Assembly: GCA_001643675.2 (NCBI GenBank)
Contig: LSRY02000027.1
Location: forward strand, 372,001-436,000
Length of the DNA: 64,000 nucleotides
From: Monocercomonoides exilis PA203
Taxonomy: Eukaryota > Protista > Preaxostyla
Direction of reading: 5' to 3'
This document shows, in pieces, positions 1 through 14,400 of the stretch. A model generated the notes under the pieces. It saw only the letters and a program-made list of their open reading frames with translations, searched no databases and was not told the origin of the DNA. Every line of letters starts with the position of its first letter. The stretch's first letter is position 1. Position numbers and translations under genes: made by a program.

Positions 1-25
1 TTCCCCAACAACATCCTCTTTTTCT

Positions 26-2801
26 ATGCCAGCAACTTCTTTCTCTCCTTCTCTTTCTCCTTCTCTTTCACCTTCTTCTTCTTTTTCACCTTCTTCTTCT
101 CTATCTCCTTCTCTTTCACCATCTTTTTCTCCATCTCAAACTCCCTTTCATCAGTTTTCTCAAACACCTTCTCCTTCTCCTTCTCCTTCCTCATCTGCAC
201 ATGTTTCCAATTCTTCTTCTCCTTTTCTGACGCCATCGTCTTCACCTGACCGCAGCTTGTCTCAAACAAAACGATATTCTCCTTCATTGATTGATAGAAG
301 GAGACACAGAGAAGAAAGAGGAGGAAGAAGAGGAGGAAGAGGGGGAAGAGGTGGAAGAGAAGAAAAAGAGGAGGAGGAGGAGGAGGAAGAGAAAGGAGAA
401 AGAGGAGGAAAAGAGGAAGAAGAGGAAGAAGAGGAGAAAGAAGGATCAAAGAAGACGAAAAGAGGGAAGGATAAGCGGAGCAGCAGAAAAGGAAAGAAAG
501 AGGAAGACAAAGAGGAAGACAAAGAGGAAGGTGAAGAAGAAGAGAGAAAGGGAAATGAGAAGGAAGAAGGAAACAAAGGAGAAAGTGAGATGAAAGTCAA
601 CAAACAGAAAGTTGGGAAGACTAACAGAAAGATTGTGATAGAAAAAGATGAAGAGACAACAGAAGAAGAGAAAGAAGATAAAAAAGAAGAGAAAGAAGAA
701 GAAGGGAAAGAAGAAGAAAAAGGGAAAAACGAAGAAGAGGAAGAAGAAGAAGAAGAAGAGAACAAGGAGAAAGAGAAGCAGAGGCAGAAGAGAAGGAGAT
801 ATAACAAGTCTGTGATAGCTATTGATTCACCAGATACAAGTGAAGAGGAGGAGGAGGAAGATAAAGAAGAGAAAGAGGGGAAAGAAGAAAAAGAAGAGAA
901 GGATGAGAAAGAGAAGGAGAAGGAGAAAGAGAAAAAAGAGAAAGTGAATGAAGCAACCAACATATCAAAATCTGCCAACAAGCCAAAAGAATCCCTTGGC
1001 ACAGAAATTGAGCAGACACAAATAGAAAACAGCGAAGCAGATGCGACTCTTCCTGTTTCCTCTTTTGGAGCATCTTTCTCATTCACTTCACCATTCATTC
1101 ATCAAAACACATCAAAAGTGACTTCTTCTGATTCTTCATCACCTTCAACAACAACGGCATCATCATCATCTTCTTCTTCTTCTTCTTCTTTATCACCAAC
1201 GTCTTCGTCTTCTTTATCTTCATCTCCAACTTCTTCATCTGCTTCTGCTGCTTCTTCTCTTCCTTCAACCAAAAGTGGCAATGAAGAAATCAACAGCACA
1301 GATTCACCACAAACAAAAGAGAAAATTCCTTCTTCTGCTTCATCTTCTCAAACAACATCATCATCAACTGCTTCTCCTTCTTCATCTTCATATTCAGCCT
1401 CTTCTTCATCAAACAACATTACTTCGACACAAAAACCATCAAATTCTTCCTCTTCTTCTTCCCCTTCCTCTTCCTCTTTATCTTTATCTTCCTCCTCTTC
1501 TTCCTCTTTATCTTCCTCCTCTTCTTCCTCTTTATCTTCTTCTTCCTCCTCTTCTCCATCTATTTTGTATCCAACCCCCCAAAAGCCTCTTTCCGACAGC
1601 TCCTCCACTCCTTCTGCCAGCCCCACCAGCACATCCACTTCATCTTCTTCTTCTGCCCCTTCTTTCACTCCCTCTCGCATCCTCCGCTCAACCCCTCCCC
1701 CTTTAATTATGCCTTTTTCTTCTCAATCATCATTGTCTTCATTGTCTTCATTGTCTTCTTCTTCTCTCTCTTCATCTTCTCTTGCACAATCACTTGGGAT
1801 TGGAATAGGATCATCTTCAAATGGAGATAGTTTTGCTTCTTCTTCTTTCTTCTCCTCTGTCCTTCCTCCATTCAATCTCGAAGATTCCTTATCTTCTTCA
1901 GTATCATCATCATCCTCCTCTTCCTCTTCTTCTTCTTCCAACCCAGATTCCATTGATGATTCATCCTCCTCTTCCCCCTCCTCCCCCGCCACCCCCTCCT
2001 ACTCCCTCTTTTCCCCCTCTGCCTACTCCCTCTCAATCACCAGCGCCTACACCCACCTTTCCCGCACGCGTCCCACCCGCTCCGGCTTCCTCAACCTCGG
2101 CAACACCTGCTACATGAACTCCACGCTTCAGTGCTTCTGCTCTTGCTTCCCCTTCCTCCGCGCCCTCCAGCGCCTTCCCCTCCCCACGCACCCAGAGACG
2201 GCTGCCCAGCTGTGCAAGACACTCGACATGGCCACACACTCACAGCCGAGGGGGATTAATCCAAAGGCAACGGTGAGTCTGCTCTGGGACGAGCTCCATC
2301 TGACAAGAGGAAGACAGCAAGATGCACACGAGTTCTTGAGACTGCTGCTGGAGTGCTTAAGAACGAAGTATGAGGAGACACAGAAGGGAATAGTGGGACA
2401 GTTGAAGAGGATGAGGCAGTGCAAGTTGAATGGCAATGAGGAAGGAGGTGAAATGGTATTGTGATAATGATTGTTATTATTATTAACAAAATTATTTAAC
2501 GTTCTATTTTTTGTATTCATTTTATTATTAATCTTTCATTTTTCTATTAACATTATAGTCAAACATGTCATTGCGTTCGCCTTCTCTTCTCCGATCTCCT
2601 TCTCCAAAACCTCCTTCCCTTTTTTCTCCTCCTCTTTCTGTTTCCACACGTCGCCGTTCTCTTCGCTCTCAATCACCTTCTGCCTCTTCTTCTTCTTCCT
2701 CTTCCTTTTCAACTGGAAATGGCACTTCATTCAATTCTCTTGTATCTCCACCTCACTCTCTCTTCTCTTCTCTCTCTTCTCTTTCGTCATTATCTTCTTC
2801 C

Positions 2802-2834
<33 letters not shown>

Positions 2835-5800
2835 GCTTTCCAGTTTCCTTTCCTCAGCCAGCAGACAAACATCTCATCTTCTCAGCCATCATTAAATGAC
2901 TCTTCTTCTCTTTCTGATTCTTCTTTATCTTCATCATCATCTTCTTCTTCTTCATCTTCTTCTTTTGATTCTTCATTCCCATATACTTTCTGCCAGCCAT
3001 CTGAAATATACTCAAAATGCTCCTATACACTCACTACAGCTGAAGAACTGATGCAAACTGAATGCGGCCTGTTGAATTCAAAAGGAAGAGGCAAAAATTC
3101 ATTTCTGAAAAAAAACAAGAAAAATAATTTGAAAGAGAAAGAACAACAACAGAGGAAAGAGAATATTCATTCAAAAGGAGATGCAATGAATGATTCATTC
3201 ACTCCAACACATTCTGACAGAAACAGCAACACTTCACCTTCCATGTCACTTAAATCTTCCTATTCACCCATTTCAACCTCAACTCCATCTTCCTCCTCTT
3301 CCTCCTCTTCATTCCCCACCATCACCGATGACCTCCTCCTCTCCTCCTCCATCTTCCACAACCCGATCACCTCCACCTTCCGCGGCGAGCAGCAGACCAT
3401 CCTCCGCTGCGTCTCCTGCTCCCACAGCACCACCTCCACACAGGAATTCTTCGACCTCTCTGTCCCCATCAAGTCTTCCCTCATGTCCTCGTTTCGCACC
3501 CTCTTCCGCCCTGAGTGGATGAGGGGGGAGAACAAGTTCCAGTGCGAACGCTGCCGCACACAGACCGAAGCAACCCGCCGTGTCATCTTCTCCTCCCTCC
3601 CTCCTGTGCTCACCCTCCACCTCAACCGCTTCGCCTTCACCCACCGCACCACCAAGAAGGTCACATCTGCCTGCCGCATCCCAACCTCCTTCGCCTTCGA
3701 CCCTGCCGTGCTGTCCCCTGAGTGCAAAGAGAGGAACTGTGTGTATGCTCTGGTGGGAGTGGTGATACACGTTGGGGTGCAGCCGTCGGCAGGGCATTAC
3801 ACAGCGCTGGTGAGAGTGGACGACCCGCTGGCGAGCCTGCCAGACACACAACAGATGGAACAGTTCATTCAGATGAAGAGGAGGTGCGTGGAGGAGCAGC
3901 AGAGGTTCATTGCAATGAAGGAAGAGGAAGAGGAGAGGAAAAAGATGGAGGAGAAGAAGAGGAAGAAGGAGGAGAGCTCAAAGGGAGCGAGGAAGAAGGC
4001 AGGGAAGAGAAGAGGGAGAGGAAGTGAAGAGAAAGAAGAAGATGATGATGATGGAGAGGCAGAAGGAGGAGAAGGAGGAAACAAAGAAGGAGGAGAAAGA
4101 GAAGGAGAAGAAGCGAATGAGAAGGATTCAAGACACAATGAAGAAGCAACAGTGCATCTGCCACCAGAATATGAATGGAGGGGTGTTGATGGCCTTGAGG
4201 CAACAGTGGAAGAAGTGGAAGGCGAAGAGAATGAGCTGAAGATGAAGATGCAGAAGAGGCAAAGGAAGATGGGGATGCGAGGGAGTGAGGGAGGGAGAGA
4301 AGGGAAAGCAGAAGAGGAACCGGAGGAAGGCGATGGAGACGAATATGATGATGAAGACGACAACCAGATTGAAGAAGAGATAGATGAAGACGCATGGAAG
4401 AAGGAGTTTGAGGAAGAATATGCACAGCAACTGGGATCAGTTGCGAGCAATTTGCATTTTGGATACAGCGGAATAGGAGAAGAGGAAGAGGAGGATGAAG
4501 AATTGTATGAAGAATTATGTGAAGAGGAAGAAGAAGGTGCTGAAAAAGAATTGGAGAGCTTGAAGAATTCCGATGACATTAGCACACTATCCAAAGATGA
4601 AGCAATGAACTTGTTATCTTCCTCTGCATCAGACATAAAACCAACCATGCCACTGAAAGAAGAAGGCAACAGTGTTATTTCCTCACTCGATCTTCCTTCA
4701 TCCTCCACCGCATTCATTCCAACTGCCCAGTCTCATCAGCAATCACTTCAATCCAACTCTGCTGCTGACACAACTTCTGCTTTCCCCTTAATTCACTCTT
4801 CAATTCCCTCTCTTTCTGCACCAGAAGCAACACATGCTTCTGAAGCTAACCCGTTTTATTCAATCTCTTCTTCTGATAACAATAGCAATGATATTAGCAA
4901 CAACATATTGAATCAAGAACTGAAGCCAATTGTGAATGCATCCACAAACAGTTCAGCACCTTTTTCTTTGAATTCTCCTTTTAAATCAAACAGCCAGCCA
5001 GCAAAAGTTGTCACTTCTCCTTTCTCTTTGCTTTCACCGCAACAATCGAATAATTCATCACCTTCTTCTTCTTCTTCTTCTTCTTCTCTTTCTTCTTCTT
5101 CCACACACTCATTCACTCTAAATATCCCTCCTCCTCTTTCAGACACCTCATCTGCTTCTTCATCTCCACCAACCAACAACAGCATATCCACTGCGAATTC
5201 TTCAAATGCTCTTTCTTCTCTCTCTTTCAACACAACAAGCACATCACCTTCTCCTCTTCCAATTCCTCTTCCTTCTTCTTCTTTATCACCTTCACCATCT
5301 CCATCATCATTATCATCATCATCTTCTTCTTCTTCTTCAAATGTTGAGATGTCTTCTTCTCCATTGTCTGTGTTTCAGAGATATGATCCAGCCATTCATT
5401 CACCTCACTCTGCACCTTCTGCTTCACCTGCCATCTTCCCTGTCCTTTCATCTGATACACCCACACCTGCATCTTCCTCTTCTCTCTCTTCCTCCTCTTC
5501 TTCTTCCTCTTCCACTCATTTCTCTCTCATTGCCATTTCTCCTTCTCCTTCCCTCCATCAGCAGTCACTCACAGGCACCGAGTACACTTCCATGCCCTTC
5601 GTAGCTGCACAATATCCTTTCCCCCATCCTTCTCCACCTGCCGTGTTTCCTGCCCCTTCTCCCTTCATCTTCACACCTGCTGAAACGCCCACTGCTTCTT
5701 TCTCTGCACATTCATCGCATTCTCAACAGGCTCCTTCTGACTCTTCTTTCTCTGGATTTGCTTCAGCACAGACATCTGCTCCATTCACTTTTCAGACTCC

Positions 5801-8800
5801 TTCATCAGCTAAATCATTATCTTCCTCTTCTTCCTCTTCATCTTCCTCTTCTTCATCAACAGCATTGTCCTGTCTTCAACCAGAATCTGCCTTTGCCCCA
5901 CCCGACAGAAGCATCATCCACATCTCTCCTCCATCATCATCATCACCCATCCCAATCGCTGCTCCTGTGCTCAAGCCAACTGCCTCTGTCCTGTCTGACC
6001 CATTCATCATCTCCTCTTCCCTCTCCTCTCTCACTCGCCCTCTGACACCTGCCCAGATCACCAGCATCCAACAGACGGTGCCACTGCAACACAGACGCTG
6101 TGCACATCTGAACAGAAAGCTGTTTAAGATGATTCAGAAAGCACAGGAACACTTTGTTGCTTCGGCAGCTGCACCGAACATCAGACGGCTGGCTATGCAC
6201 AAGGCAAAGGAAATGGCGCAAGTGAAGAGAGAAAGAAGGAAGGAGCTGAAGGGGAAAGAGCAGAGAAGATTGAAACGAAACACGGCAAGTGTTGCTTCAA
6301 GAAGGAGAGGGTTGAGAAACGAGAAGAAAGAAGAAGAGGAGAAGAAGAGCATTGATGAGAAAGAAGAGAAAGATGAGAAAGATGAAAAAGAAGAGAATTT
6401 GAAGAGAAAAGCAAGTCGAACGAATCAAAAGCAGTCTCAGGCAAAGACTCATCAAGTTCCGAAGTTGAATAGGAAGCGATCATCAAATGGAAGATTTCTC
6501 AAGAAAATAGAGGCAGACGAAGAAACATCAGCTGCAAAAACTGAAGAGGAAGAGGAAGAAGAGGAAGGAGAAGAAGAAGAAGGAGAAGAAGAAGAAGAAG
6601 AAGCAAAATCAAAAGACAAAAAGAAAGAGAAAGAGAAAGATAGAGAAGTTGATGTTGTGACAGTAGCAGATGTTCCTTCAGCACACGAAGAAGGAGATGA
6701 TGAAGAAGAAAAAGAAGAGGAAGAGGAAGAGGAAGAAGAGCAATCAACACAGAAAGACAAAAGAAACAAACGAAGAAAAAGGAGTATTCAATCAGGTAGA
6801 AGCAGCAGTCGCTCAGAAAGGACAAGAACAAAGAGAAGCTCATCCAAACAGGAAGCTCACTCAGAAAAGAGCGAAGGAAGTGGAAGACATGGAAGAAAGA
6901 TCTCAATAATTGCAAAGGATGACGAAACATCGAATTGTGAGAAAGAGGATGACAAACAGGAAGACAGCAGTGAAAGTGAAGAAGAAGCAGCAAATAATAA
7001 TGATGGTGATCACTTGGTAAAGAAGCCAATTAAAAGAGCATCAAGACAAAGGGCAAAGAGAAGCAGAACAGTTAGAACGAACAAGGATCAATCAAATGCA
7101 AACAACGAGGTTGAATTGTCTTCAACAGATGACAGCGAGGCTGTTTCAGAAATAACAGAGTCACAACTCATTGGGAAGAAAAGAAGGAGAGGAACTGTGT
7201 TGGTTGATGTGGATGCTGAAGAAGAAGAAGAGGAAGAGGAAGAAGATAATACTGAAGAAGATTGTGGCGATAATAAAAAATCAAATGAAGGAGAAAACAA
7301 AGATGTTAACAAAGATATAACAAACAAAGCAGAAGACAAAAAGATAACGATTGATGATGAAGCCGAAGAAGCTGCAGTGGCAGCAGAAGATAAGACAGTT
7401 ATATCTGTTGAAGAGAACGAAGGCAATTCTGCTCAAGGAAAAAGACAGCGCATTTGTGTGATTGACACTCCAGGCAAAGCGAACGAGCTGCATGATTTGA
7501 CAGAGGAGAGTGTTGTTGAGATAAAAGAGCCATCAAACACTCTTCAGAGAAAGAAGAAGCGTGTTTCTGAAGAATTGAGTGAGGATCCAATCAAAATACC
7601 AGACGCATCACGTCCTTCACAGCAAGTGAATGCCCCGCCAGCGGCTGAAGCAGAAAAGGAGAGCAAAATCAAAATGAGGAGAAGAAGAGCATCAGAAAGA
7701 GAATTGATTTCGTTGGGCATTATTGACGAGCAGGCAAAGAGAATGCCGATGACTCGGAACAAAGGACTGAAGAAGGAGGAGAGCAAAGACGATGGCCAGT
7801 CAATCTCAACAAGATTGAGGAGCAGAGAGACTAAGAAAGAGGAGAAGAAAGGAGAGAGAAATACAAGATTGTTCCAAAAGGTTGAAAGTGCTCAAAGGAA
7901 AGAGGAAAGCCACAGAAGAAAAGAAGAAAGGAAAGGCAACGAAAAAGAAGTGATTCAAGTGACAAATTCAGATGAGACACAGAATCACAGCACGCGAAAT
8001 AGAAAACAACAAGCTAATCAAAAGACAGAGAAACGAGAAAAACAGAATACAAAAACGATGTCGCAAACAAAACGAAGTAAAGAGAGAAGAGCTGCCAACA
8101 GCAAAGCCGAAATTTTGGAGAGCATATTGAAAGAAAACGACACAACTGATGGTTCCGAAAGCAGCGATCTGTTTCCTCAGTCAGAAGAAAAAGAAGTGAA
8201 AGAAAGCAGAAGCAGAAGCAGAAGCAGAAGAAACAGGAGAGAGAAAACGAAAAATGGAGCTGGAACTGCAAAGAAAGAGCATTTGGACAAAGAAAGTGAA
8301 AATGAGAAGAAAGAAGAAGCAGACAAGAAAGAAGAGGAGAAAGAGGAAGAAATAGAGGAAAAAGAAGACATTGAACAAGAAAGTGGTACAGATGAATTTG
8401 AAGATGAAGAAGATGAAAGCAGTTTGTTTGAAGATGAATACGGACGCCCTCAGATGTCACGAATTGTCATTCCTGCTTTTCTGTTGATATTCAAAAAGGA
8501 AATAATGGCAAGAAACGCAAAGATAATAAGCGACCGAATATATCGCCACGAAATGATGAAGAAGCGAAGAAGACTCAGAGAAGCCAAAAAGATGAGAGAA
8601 ACATTGATTTCTTCATCTTCATACAATCAGAAATCCAAATCAAGCAATTCTTTGCCTTCAGGCAATTCTTCTGGCTCACTCGCCATGTCAAATGCCTCAA
8701 CACCCGCTTCATTCACTATCCACACTTCACCCCACACTCCACTCTCAAAGCCATTGGCAGCACATGCCAAGTTCCAACTGCTCACTTCACAAGACGATAC

Positions 8801-10328
8801 ACCTTTTGAGCAGACGCTGCATCAGCAGCACTTCGAACCACTGGTCCAGATGCAAAATGGAGCAAGCTCAAAAGAGTTGATTCCTTCGACTTCTTCTTCA
8901 TTCACAACATCAACACCCTCAGGAAAATCACATTCAGCTATCTCTTCTTCCTCTTCCTCTTCTTCAGCTTCACTTTCATCAGCAATGCGTGTGATGCCCT
9001 TGTCAATCACCCCAGTTCCTCTCTCTTTCTCTTCCATCACATCGTCTCCTCCTTCCATCCAGAAGCAGTTCACACATTCACTCACACACTCTCATTTTCT
9101 CTTCCCGTTTCTGAACCGTTTGGCGAGCACAGACCACTCTGGTGCTTCTCCACAGACATCAGGCACTGCAGATATTTCTCCATATCACTCAAGCTCTTCC
9201 TTCAGCAAGCTCTATCTGTCTCCTTCCTCCTGCTCTCTCTTCTCCTCTTCAAATGGCATCATCCCCAACCAGATCCCCCTTCTCCCTGTACCTCTACCTG
9301 AGCCATCGCTGTCACTCCCTTCAGAAAAAGCGATTCTTCAGAATGCTTCTATTGCAGTGTATCTGTCTTCAAAGCTTGCTCCAACTACTTCCACTGCCTC
9401 TCGAACTGTGTCTGGCTCAAATAGCTATTGCTCTTCATCTGACCGCCGAAGCCCACCTCCACGTGGCCGATCGCCTGCTCCTTCCTCTTCCTCCTCTAAT
9501 TCGCGTGGAAAGGGCCGCTCTTCCCCCGCACCTGCATTTGCTATCACACCACCTCCTCTGCCAGGCTTTGCAGATGAGTCTGAAGTGCTCGCCACATCAA
9601 TTCGAGGGCGATCGCGTTCAGCATCGCCATCCAGTTTTGCACCAGCTTCATCTGCTCATTCTACTTCACATTCGACTCATCAGCCTTCTTCTTCTTCGTC
9701 GTCGTCGTCCTCTGGTGCTTCAGGTGCTCCGAATGGAGTGCTTTCAGATCGGAGAAACAGATTTAGCTCAACTCTTCTTTCTCCTCCTCGTGTTCGCTCT
9801 TCACAGTCACTTGGCTCGGCAGACGGCGTGCTCAAGTCTTCTTTGGATATGCCCGGATGTCTCAACGGAAATAGCTCATCCCAACCAAATTCGGCTGTGT
9901 TTGCACCAAAACCTTCAAAGAGATCGAACTCTCCCCCTCCCTTTTCATTCACTCCACCGCCAGGACAGTCTTCTCAATCAACATCATCATCATCAGCTTC
10001 ACAATCCTCTATGCTTCCCAACCCGTTTTCTTCAAAGGCTCGTTCGCGTCCTTCAACTCCATTTGCATCTTCTGCTCAATCTGATGACACTGCCTCATCG
10101 ACTTCTGATCCACTGACATTTACTCTTCCTGAGATTTTGACATTGGCGCTTTCAGCCAACCGCGGTGAGTGGATTCTTTGTGATGACTCAGACGTGACAA
10201 GAGTTGCGCTTTCGACACTTGCACACACGTTGAATGGAACACGCAACACTTCACACACACCTTATCTCTTGTTCTACACACGCATTGACCCTCCTGATGA
10301 GTACAAGCAACTGGCAGAAGAAGAATGA
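26..10328 (+). CDS. Ubiquitin-specific protease (peptidase C19), USP1-like; 2 exons (<=26-2455, 2559-10328), ~3,400 aa; 5' end may lie upstream of the window
   Basis: Exon 1 has the Cys box GFLNLGNTCYMNSTLQC (Cys at 2108-2110) and QQDAHEFL. Exon 2 has Zn-ribbon CVSC/CERC, LPPVLTLHLNRF, the His box VVIHVG...GHYTALVRV (His at 3795), WILCDDSDV (Asp at 10182) and TPYLLFY. The two ORFs are joined in frame by a phase-0 intron. The frame is open back to position 2. Confidence 0.93.
2456..2558 (+). other. Spliceosomal intron of the USP gene (103 nt, phase 0)
   Basis: ATG|GTATTG donor, AT-rich body, TATTAAC branch-like motif, TATAG|TCA AAC ATG acceptor. Removal fuses ORF 26..2464 to ORF 2565..10328 in frame. 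Confidence 0.9.
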
Positions 10329-10919
10329 AAAAAAAGCTCATCGATGTTTTCTTTGATTATGTCAAAAAAAGAAAGATATTATTTTTTGTTTATCTTAATA
10401 ATTATTCATTGTCTTTCATAAGCATTGATAAGAATTTAGAAAAACGACTTTCGATTTGATGGTCTTTTATTAATTATTGAAATGTAAAGTATTTACAAAA
10501 GCTTAATTAATATTTCTTTTCTTCACTTCTCAAAAAGAAATTGTTAAAATCGACAACAAACTAATCAGCTTTTGCAAAAATGAAATTGTTGAGAAAAAAA
10601 AGTTTTGCCTTAAATAATGTTAAAAATAGTGCTATCAAAAAAGATGCAACACAAAAATGCAACGAAAAAAGAAGCATCAAAGACCTTGAGGCATTTCAAA
10701 CTCAACAAAACAGAAGTTGACCAAATGTCAATGATTATCGATGCAAAAATATAGAAAATTGCATCAATAAAAAATAAATTCAAAACAAACCATTGAAAAA
10801 AAAATCAAAGAAACTGTAATTAACGAATTACCAAGCCTTTCTCACCTCATAATATATCAAAAAATGCTTAAGAAGCAAAACATTAGATTAAAAGAAAAAC
10901 ATGAGTTTCAAACAAAAAT

Positions 10920-11478: not shown

Positions 11479-14400
11479 TTACTTTTTCCTTGACGATGAA
11501 GAATGTTTTTTGGATGAACCTTGTTGGCTCCTTTTCAAAGTTCCATTTGAGCCTTTTGAACTGCCACTGGATTTTTCTGATCCCTTTGAACCGTCAGCAG
11601 ACTCTTTTCCCTTTCCTCCCTTGTAGTGAGTATTCCTGGTCGCACTTGTTGGCCCTTCATACTCCGAAGCGCTTGCCTCGTTCTTCTTAGATTTGCAGCA
11701 TAACTCCTTCGCCCAAGTGAAGAACGTTAATCCGCTGGTTGTGTCTTTCTTCCTTCTCCATTCAAACTTCTCCTTGGCATTCCTCTCTGCAGCTGGATCT
11801 GGCGGCACCATCCACAACTTCCTGCCACACATCAGAATGCATTCGTTGAACATCAGAAATATCAGCACAATCACCCCCATCATCCATATGGCAGCGAGTG
11901 AATGTGTCAGATCCAAAAACAATGGATCAATAACTGCCGAAATGGCATTAAACATGTCTCTCCCGTTGAGCTGCTTTATGGATTCTTGTGCAGCTTTTTC
12001 GATTTCTTCGTTTCCTTTCACTGTCAAAGCATCAATGAACGCATAAAATTGATCACCATCGTCTTCAATCAACTTTGTAGTTCCCTTGTCAACATTCACC
12101 AAATTGATATCATAAAGCGCTGCATCAAAAAGATCACTTAAAGATTTTGTTGTATCGCTGTACATCTGTCTGAAGGCATTTTCACCGTCCTGGTCGCGAA
12201 AGATGTATCGAGACAATGCATTTGCATCAATCGACGCAAAACGAAGGAAGCGAAAATCTTCCTTTGAAATGTCGTATTTGGAAGCACTTCCATCCTCTCG
12301 GCTGATAAACTCATCAGCCAAATGGTGCACAGAATCTGATGAAACGTGTGCGCCTGAGGAATCATCCAAAACATCAAATGTGGACGAGAAGGTCATTTCT
12401 CTTTCTGGTGTCGCAGAGTCATTTGATCTTTGTCCAGACTCCAATACATCATTTGAATATGTCAGTTTCATATGATTGTCAAAGGAATAAATAGAACTCT
12501 CACCGCTGAGATAAGAATCCACTATATCGTTTGGAGGATAACCGCGTGAATTCTTAGAAGCGGTTTTTGACGGATTTGCAGGATTAAATCTGCGTTTCTG
12601 AAGCGCATAAGATGCAACAGAGTCGCCAGACATCGCCTTGATGGCTAAAACAATGCGTTTCCTCATTTCTTTCATGGCATATTTCACCCCTTTCACATAT
12701 TTTTCAGCACCTGTTTTATTTAAGTGGTGCATCTGTACCTCTTTTTGTGTATCAGCAAATAAATGCCAAACATCAGACAGTGAATCATTTTTGTTTATTC
12801 CTTGGGAATTGGCGATTCCGTTTGACCTTTCTATCTTGCGCAGCTGTGCAGGAGTCTCCGACAGAACAGCTGAAGTGGAAGCCTCCATCATCATCTGCCC
12901 GTCCAAAAACTCCAGAACAGCCTCAAACAACCTGTCAAACTGTGTCATGTCTTCCTGTTCGTACACGCCATAGTACACATCCAGTGCGGGTGTGGTCACC
13001 ACTGCAAACGCAAGACACACCAGGCCAATGACAAAGAAAAAAATATGATGGAAAAACAGCGATGCACACAGAACACCATCTTCCCGGAAGAACTTTGAGC
13101 AGAACGCTGTTGCCCACAGAAGTAAGATAAACAAGCCCAGAATGGCATAAGAAACACCGATGACTATGTAGCCGTAGAGCTGATATATCGCTTTCCAATC
13201 ATCTGAGAATCCATATGCATCGTTCAGCTGACTGCTCAAGGATTTAGCTCGTTTTGTGAATGTCTCAATTTGCGTTGAGGCATCTTTGGTTAACCGAATC
13301 AGCCCGTCTTCCATTGCAGCATAATCGTCATTTAGCATCTGAATGAAATTGTCGACATTATCTATATCTGTTGTATCCCCTTCTGGGTCGCCTGCACTAT
13401 CTTCAGCACAATGAGTAATGTTATTTGAAAGAATATCTATGGCCTCCTCAAGAGAGATATCATTACTAAGTGAATATCTTCCATTCAAAACAGAAAGCTG
13501 TTGTAAAAGCTGAGAATACTTCAGCGTTTGGAAGCATTCACAGTTCAACGAGTGTTCGGCGCTATATTCTTTAAGCGACAAAAGTAAATTGAAAGTGTTC
13601 CATTTTATATCCAATATGCTTTTGAAATGTGTGCAATTTGCTGATCCTAACGAACCGTGCATATTCGTTAATGACATTTTATAATCTTCAGTAACAGTCC
13701 TGTTTATGTTAAGATTATTTAATAAAAATTCAACATCAACATTAGTTTCATTTGGTAAGCTTTCTATGAATAAGCAACTTGTTTCATCATATTTGATGTA
13801 TTTACCATCCAAATTGACAGTAAATGGATAATATGAGGATATGGAATCAACAAATTTTGCGGCATTCGAGCAGAATATTTCATTAATAGCTTCTTCATCA
13901 CTTAAATTTTGACGTATTGGCATGATTGCCTTTGAAAGAGGATCATTCAAATAATCCGCAAAAAGTTTTGGATGGTTACTACGAATACATTGATTGTTTG
14001 TCCAAGTTGCATCATCATCATTTGTTAGTGTGTGGAATTGGAATTAAAGCAAAGAAATTGGTAATATGAAGATTCATTATTTCAAAAGAAGAAGATCATT
14101 CTTTTTAATTGAAGCAAGATAAATTGAATTGCAAACATTGTGTACATCGTCTGAGCTTTCAGAGCATCTTCCAATAGCTTCTCCTTTTGATATTTTCCAT
14201 TAACGTAACTTGTTGTCTTCGAAGCATATTCAGCAATGTATGATCCAACTATTTAAAAAATAATACACAGAAGTCAATAAGCACGCATAATTAATTCTCA
14301 AGAAAAAAGTATGATACCTGTCTCAAATCCAGATAATCCATTAACGATCTCAATCATTTTTCCAATTGTATTTTTCGAAGTGGGGAAAAGCCCTTCGGCA

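Follow-up and report, generated by a model that had tools for sequence, protein, structure and literature searches.

A gene on the + strand of a 64,000-nucleotide (nt) stretch of Monocercomonoides exilis PA203 (hereafter the window, to which all positions refer unless a contig is stated) encodes a ubiquitin-specific protease (USP) whose catalytic His and catalytic Asp lie in one uninterrupted frame, 2,129 codons apart. The observation of this split, USP1-like enzyme is real, and the architecture is a known one carried to an extreme. The conserved parts of the catalytic domain occur as three pieces, separated by a smaller and a very large low-complexity insert at the two sites at which human USP1 also carries inserts, and the large insert is open in frame, is matched by RNA contigs over much of its length and occurs at the same site in two other oxymonads. 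As discussed below, the gene probably encodes a deubiquitinase of the USP1/USP12/USP46 group, in which a core assembled from the three pieces would fold normally with the loop kept outside.

A USP domain in three pieces

The two-exon gene model yields a product of 3,910 residues, with 1,321 codons contributed by exon 1 and 2,589 by exon 2. The ATG of exon 1 is located 1,507 bases 5' of the window (L001:4493; contig 22 position 370493), after an AT-rich spacer, and the protein starts with a low-complexity N-terminal region of 1,190 residues. Thus, the gene begins outside the window, and its Cys box, which the preliminary description did not contain, lies in the upstream exon. The parts of the gene are as follows.

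1..2455, + strand: exon 1, window part; low complexity (Ser-rich, Glu/Lys-rich), followed by the USP Cys box and thumb (Pfam UCH 2-115, E 8e-17)
2093..2122, + strand: Cys box NLGNTCYMNS, with the catalytic Cys codon TGC at 2108-2110 (residue 1206); aligns with the USP12 Cys box
2315..2335, + strand: QQDAHEF motif of the USP thumb
2456..2558, + strand: intron 1; 103 nt, GT..AG, phase 0, 16-25% G+C
2559..10328, + strand: exon 2; a single stop-free frame to the TGA at 10326-10328
2559..3374, + strand: start of exon 2, L1-site insert; ~270 Ser-rich low-complexity codons leading from thumb to fingers
3375..3821, + strand: fingers/palm and His box; CxxC pairs at 3408-3419 and 3543-3554 (Pfam UCH 113-220, E 1.6e-23)
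3822..10160, + strand: L2-site insert; 2,113 stop-free codons, low complexity
10164..10328, + strand: Asp box WILCDDSDV and C-terminus; Asp-Asp at 10182-10187 (residues 3863-3864), TPYLLFY at 10257-10277

The catalytic His codon (CAT, 3795-3797, within GHY at 3792-3800) corresponds to residue 1734 and aligns with the His box of USP12. All critical residues are kept, including the Cys, the Asn of the Cys box, the His, both Asp residues and both CxxC pairs. Pfam UCH matches both exons and ends at position 220 of its 254-position profile, such that the distal Asp box is missed by a standard domain scan.

The preliminary description, made from the letters of the window, had placed the His and Asp boxes in one frame, and the distance from CAT 3795 to the first GAT at 10182 is indeed 2,129 codons (2,130 to the second Asp). 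Its statement that the two residues are normally close together in USPs agrees with a survey of the 150 nearest proteins, drawn from representatives of 1.84 billion proteins: in the 131 where a pattern located both boxes, the His-Asp spacing has a median of 17 residues and a maximum of 564. Likewise, the insert, which had been described as more than 10 times longer than that of USP1, is about sixteen-fold longer (~2,115 versus ~130 residues). The resemblance of the insert flanks to USP1, which that description had noted, now rests on a test, since the Asp box matches USP1 alone among solved structures and the flanks fall at the USP1 L2 site.

For this test, the conserved pieces were compared separately with the sequences of solved structures; the joined M. 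exilis sequence was used only for numbering, for self-comparison, for pairwise BLAST against the two orthologue loci described below and for the tree. The best matches of the fingers/His piece are USP12 (1.8e-19), USP1 (3.4e-18) and USP46 (6.5e-18), and the Cys-box piece matches USP12, USP35 and USP46. For the Asp-box piece, USP1 is the only USP matched among solved structures at E up to 10, with six distinct USP1 sequences and a best value of 2.8e-4. The Asp-box alignment to USP1 is free of gaps from the Asp-Asp pair through PYLLFY, with identical spacing, and it pairs the residues encoded at 10182-10187 with USP1 D751/D752, of which the second (D752) is the vital one in USP1 (PMC10867860).

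The flanks of the large insert map to USP1 residues ~496-603 and 740-785 (7ay1_D), and the same flanks abut at ~338/335 in the L2-deleted USP1 construct 9n9y_B. Together, this mapping and the abutment in L2-deleted constructs place the insert at the L2 site of USP1, a segment whose deletion leaves USP1 activity unchanged (PMC8024992). In addition, the thumb and fingers pieces that surround the ~270-codon insert align to contiguous USP12 sequence, at the position of the USP1 L1 site. Core identity to other USPs is ~26-37%. Word-index searches with the fingers/His region returned nothing among proteins of 1,424-4,530 amino acids (aa) at E 1e-5 or of 283-900 aa at E 1e-8, a result that carries little meaning given these strict thresholds and narrow lengths, and a feature-based cluster search returned generic UCH clusters only.

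The insert, its open frame and its RNA

Over the whole insert (3822-10160), the coding frame contains no stop, in contrast to 62, 115, 133, 44 and 63 stops in the other five frames, where the longest open run is at most 333 codons. A local-composition model predicts 96 in-frame stops (P(0) ~2e-42), and each of 500 block shuffles gave at least 70. Since the shuffles never fell below 70, these results show that the open frame is maintained and is not a by-product of composition bias.

The insert consists of 18.8% Ser, 11.8% Glu, 7.6% Lys and 0.1% Trp, and the alternation of Ser-rich and Glu/Lys-rich blocks noted earlier was seen again in this analysis. Six runs of at least four Lys/Arg residues are present. 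Tandem Repeats Finder rows account for only a small part of the insert; therefore, recent microsatellite growth fails to explain most of it. In addition, a low-complexity-masked self-comparison of the M. exilis protein detected no internal repeats. The His strand leads straight into the low-complexity sequence, with no alternative Asp/Asn box just after the His. Several elements stand out within the insert:

4173..4199, + strand: motif EW-R-GVDGLE, also present in the Streblomastix strix insert
6093..6215, + strand: higher-complexity, helix-like island with weak similarity to the Blattamonas nauphoetae insert (E 0.029)
8460..8615, + strand: second higher-complexity island, hydrophobic and then basic
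9351..9371, + strand: motif IAVYLSS, common to S. strix and in the same order relative to the first motif

Third-position G+C is 0.37 in the insert, as opposed to 0.72-0.82 in the conserved USP core (2084-3821). It rises to 0.45-0.52 at 5859-6458, 7659-7958 and 8559-8858, which are less repetitive stretches. Two alternative open reading frames (ORFs) inside the insert, at 3869-4717 (- strand, 282 aa) and 9142-10116 (+ strand, other frame, 324 aa), are by-products of purine-rich/pyrimidine-rich low complexity, because repeats coding for Glu/Lys give Ser/Phe/Leu on the opposite strand.

Of the sampled words of 2559-10400, 69-80% occur in the four RNA runs of a study from 2024. We compared the contigs of these runs with 2380-8379, a stretch chosen to contain intron 1 as a control. 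Contigs without a single mismatch cover 3233-4064, 4124-4978, 5521-5811, 5866-6448, 6804-7202, 7254-7935, 7928-8193 and 8241-8379; the first of them spans the His box and reaches 240 bases into the insert. At the control intron, an 810-nt contig piece starts exactly at 2558, the acceptor, and 546 further upstream bases do not lie on the intron. This break fits spliced RNA and, as such, argues against plain DNA contamination.

In the insert part 3822-8379, no GT..AG joint was found among the RNA contigs. The joints listed for these contigs were all rejected as splicing, having sides of ~21 nt in GAA-rich repeats, ends other than GT..AG and often foreign letters between the two sides; we read them as cross-matches from other low-complexity transcripts. 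Altogether, the insert is transcribed, it stays in the mRNA without breaking the reading frame, and it would therefore be translated.

Orthologues and family affinity

An exhaustive search of protein representatives found two oxymonad relatives, the species of which follow from their accession prefixes (PMC10703272). In B. nauphoetae P0016 (1,764 aa), the three conserved pieces are present, and the His and Asp are 274 residues apart. At S. strix locus L002, all pieces lie in one frame with a His-Asp distance of 1,329 residues. This frame is free of TGA for 2,684 codons when TAA and TAG are read as Gln, which we take to be the code of S. strix; between the His and Asp boxes, the coding frame contains no TGA, compared with 25 and 87 in the other frames. 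The in-frame S. strix QQDAHEF motif, which would contain two stops under the standard code, supports this assignment. Public S. strix models split the orthologue (L002:392-8443, + strand) into proteins of 607 aa (P0006) and 391 aa, and these split models look like artefacts of the standard code.

The Asp boxes of M. exilis and S. strix are 58% identical over 67 residues, which indicates that the distal piece is under constraint. Moreover, the inserts of these two species have two non-repetitive motifs in common and in the same order, EW-x-GVDGLE near the start and IAVYLSS near the end, and the M. exilis insert shows weak similarity to that of B. nauphoetae. The shared site and motifs indicate that the insert is old in oxymonads and contains short conserved elements, with its length varying about eight-fold.

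To place the oxymonad proteins, a maximum-likelihood tree of 47 domains was computed. Proteins with more than one Cys box or with no recognisable box were left out, as were the long branches P0100, P0123 and P0124 and the P0043-like proteins, the clearest USP1 relatives (168 bits to USP1), which failed the box-pattern filter. Because the source names offered only one USP1 name and one Capsaspora entry, clade labels were taken from the best solved-structure match, with P0026 at 323 bits to USP12 and P0022 at 131 bits to USP1. The three oxymonad proteins form one clade (Shimodaira-Hasegawa-like approximate likelihood ratio test, SH-aLRT, 99), which lies outside both the USP12/46 clade (SH-aLRT 100) and the USP1-like clade (SH-aLRT 96). 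Approximately unbiased (AU) tests reject neither a union with the USP1-like clade (p 0.47) nor one with USP12/46 (p 0.65). Consequently, the tree of USP boxes, which the preliminary description had proposed as a check, does not separate USP1 from USP12/46 affinity.

Reciprocal searches of the genome carry more weight than the tree and favour a USP1-like identity. The USP1-like P0022 returns this gene at 92.9 bits and the next locus at 39, and the USP12/46-like P0026 returns this gene at 91.5 bits and a locus on contig 11 at 89.7 and 63.8 bits. The contig-11 locus (1601753-1602966, + strand) is a compact multi-exon USP with 42% and 39% identity to the USP12/46 orthologue in two pieces, and it is likely the USP12/46 orthologue of the genome. 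Two further loci, on contig 7 and contig 66 (L005, L006), were considered as USP12/46 genes and dropped, since neither matched a solved structure at E 1e-10. The window gene has no close paralogue in the genome. The window gene itself does not have the compact domain of the USP12/46 type, given its two large inserts, though a sister position to USP12/46 is not rejected by the AU test. We therefore favour filing the gene as USP1-like, by its architecture and its reciprocal match, with an orthology to USP1 or USP12/46 that is ambiguous in the tree.

The genome also contains matches above cut-off to DUF3337, the C-terminal domain of UAF1/WDR48 (contig 13 1145573-1146040; contig 15 282609-283037), and to FancD2 (contig 65 35369-35833). 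Judged by these domain matches, the UAF1-like and FancD2-like genes are a candidate partner and a candidate substrate of a USP1-type enzyme.

Fold, alternative explanations and context

To consider how such a protein might fold, we modelled the B. nauphoetae domain (P0016:840-1764) with AlphaFold from an alignment of 36 rows. In this model, the core is predicted with a local confidence (predicted local distance difference test, pLDDT) above 90, and values are ~30 in the L1-site loop and in most of the L2-site loop, at the start of which two long helices are predicted. The His strand (595-601) and the Asp strand (866-870) form parts of a domain that aligns with USP12, USP46 and USP1 at Z ~31 over residues 10-905, thereby spanning both loops.

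We propose that the M. exilis catalytic domain would comprise a first piece with the Cys box and thumb, a second with the fingers, palm and His, and a third with the final palm strands and the Asp-Asp pair, parted by loops of ~270 residues at the L1 site and ~2,115 at the L2 site. The large loop would leave the fold after the His strand and return just before the Asp strand, at a surface site, such that the three core pieces could assemble into an ordinary USP fold from which the loop protrudes as a disordered, tail-like element. The two ends of the loop may be held together by a helical segment at its base. The conserved short motifs, basic clusters and Ser-rich tracts of the loop could serve docking, localisation or regulation. 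As the loops of the three oxymonads measure 274, 1,329 and 2,129 residues, most of the length would be neutral growth of low-complexity sequence, specific to each lineage, at a site that permits it.

We assign a probability of roughly 0.72 to the reading that the gene is a two-exon deubiquitinase of the USP1/USP12/USP46 group with USP1-like architecture, in which the three-piece core folds normally and a retained, translated loop lies outside. Several points weigh against it. The RNA support comes from assembled contigs of a single study, as opposed to raw reads, compared over 2380-8379, and RNA libraries can contain DNA. The middle piece is marginally more similar overall to USP12 than to USP1, and the oxymonad clade lies outside the USP1-like clade (SH-aLRT 96). 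Finally, the activity of the enzyme, its folding across a 2,100-residue loop and the absence of cleavage are all properties that we infer. The stronger proposal, that the uncut chain of 3,910 residues is itself the active enzyme, a single USP domain whose neighbouring catalytic strands are bridged by a loop of over 2,100 residues, is tentative, and we put it at somewhat below even odds. The loop may be among the longest intradomain loops described.

The best-surviving alternative, which we nevertheless consider unlikely, is that the translated loop is subsequently cleaved, either autocatalytically or by a different protease, leaving two non-covalently held chains as after L2 autocleavage of USP1. 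Human USP1 does cleave itself inside L2, a very long, exposed and disordered loop would be an easy target for proteases, and the helical pair at the loop base in the B. nauphoetae model could keep the fragments together. However, the M. exilis insert contains no L-x-G-G or ubiquitin-tail-like motif, in line with the preliminary description, which had spotted no L-x-G-G autocleavage motif; its only Gly-Gly dipeptides, four in number, all lie inside Glu/Gly runs.

A loss of catalysis, with the protein now a dead scaffold or an enzyme in decay, appears improbable; in this reading, the loop would have destroyed the fold, and the boxes would be retained solely to bind ubiquitin. In its favour, general polymer considerations predict a large entropic cost for bringing together the ends of a loop with more than 2,000 residues, and the core has strongly diverged from other USPs, with the low identities given above. 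Nonetheless, the full set of catalytic and CxxC residues is kept, the Asp box is conserved between M. exilis and S. strix to the extent described, third-position G+C is high in the core and the gene is transcribed.

We regard as very improbable that part of the insert is spliced out, chiefly in 8380-10160, which would give a mature loop of fewer than 2,129 residues. The RNA-contig comparison ends at 8379, and the RNA runs lack a fifth or more of the sampled words, with contig gaps that coincide with repeats. On the other hand, the frame is stop-free through 10160, where 96 stops are expected, and the 1,520-nt RNA contig that matches from 8241 continues beyond 8379. M. exilis introns have a mean length of 119 base pairs and 27.6% G+C (PMC8767320), whereas the G+C of 100-nt segments of the insert never falls to the intron-like range (below 27%), the minimum of 0.29 occurring in a stretch coding for Lys/Asn. 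The S. strix orthologue keeps its 1,329 codons without TGA, and GT..AG joints are absent from the RNA contigs over 3822-8379. Splicing-out of most of the loop, which the preliminary description had raised as an alternative, is thus largely excluded by the RNA contigs, the composition, the open frame and the orthologues. Lastly, an assembly artefact of low-complexity DNA is hardly credible: the region is of low complexity and the assembly is nanopore based (PMC8767320), but Illumina RNA contigs from the independent 2024 study show zero differences and no indels over long tiles of the insert, of which recognisable tandem repeats form only a small part.

If the three-piece core with its external loop is compared with known enzymes, human USP1 is the closest in architecture. 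It is the UAF1-activated deubiquitinase of FANCD2, FANCI and PCNA, and, like the M. exilis protein, it carries one insert that joins thumb to fingers (L1) and a second one that separates the His strand from the Asp strand (L2); the spacing from Asp-Asp to PYLLFY and both Asp residues are also shared, and UAF1-like and FancD2-like genes in the M. exilis genome provide a similar setting. It differs in an L2 insert of ~130 residues as opposed to ~2,115, and the M. exilis protein lacks the Gly-Gly autocleavage motif in its insert and has an extra N-terminal low-complexity region of 1,190 residues. Human USP12 and USP46 are the best overall matches of the Cys-box and fingers/His pieces and tie with USP1 structurally (Z ~31). 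In contrast to the M. exilis protein, they are compact (~370 residues) with no L1 or L2 insert, and their Asp box gives no match to the M. exilis box at E up to 10. The B. nauphoetae and S. strix proteins (P0016 and L002) share the three pieces, the insert sites and one clade with the M. exilis protein and differ in insert length, with 274 and 1,329 residues compared with 2,129.

In Plasmodium, Dictyostelium and similar protists, repetitive, biased loops grow at surface sites of conserved catalytic domains. These low-complexity inserts usually measure tens to a few hundreds of residues, whereas in M. exilis a single loop exceeding 2,100 residues separates catalytic residues that sit on adjacent strands. 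USP domains accept inserts at few fixed points, with USP1 L2 as the textbook case between His and Asp; in the present gene, the insert at this site is about sixteen times as long and is supported by RNA, and three genera have the site in common. An active enzyme would imply that a β-hairpin with catalytic residues tolerates a loop longer than most whole proteins, which bears on the folding of discontinuous domains and on gene finders and domain searches that miss distal pieces. If the uncut chain is active, the series of 274, 1,329 and 2,129 residues would constitute a natural test of how loop length affects folding and catalysis, and it could show whether closure through the helical base and the motifs depends on a partner. 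The gene also provides a candidate USP1-type enzyme, alongside UAF1-like and FancD2-like genes, in an amitochondriate protist, and it may indicate that proteins across this genome have commonly gained very long low-complexity stretches.

Elsewhere in the genome, the open frames that contain USP domains are often 3,000 to 10,690 codons long, and some of these domains extend across more than 4 kb (for example, contig 18 971861-973780, contig 58 1050446-1055001 and contig 28 257123-261055). Giant low-complexity growth in and around the USP family thus appears to be common in this genome. Similarly, several Metallophos matches end mid-profile in open frames of 3,500-8,300 codons; four of them, on contig 22 (749784-750155), contig 47 (812613-813011), contig 28 (141199-141621) and contig 33 (130911-131303), end at positions 106-142 of 191 in frames of 5,000-8,300 codons. 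Other catalytic domains may therefore also be interrupted by long inserts. A frame of 2,102 codons on contig 22, ~279 kb beyond the window (L007:2123-8431), matches no Pfam family at E up to 5. Upstream of the USP gene, on the opposite strand (L001:216-2159, - strand), lies an ORF of 647 aa that resembles a membrane protein, contains a Cys-rich stretch, ends in Gly-Met repeats and may be related to the gene at window positions 11479-13950.

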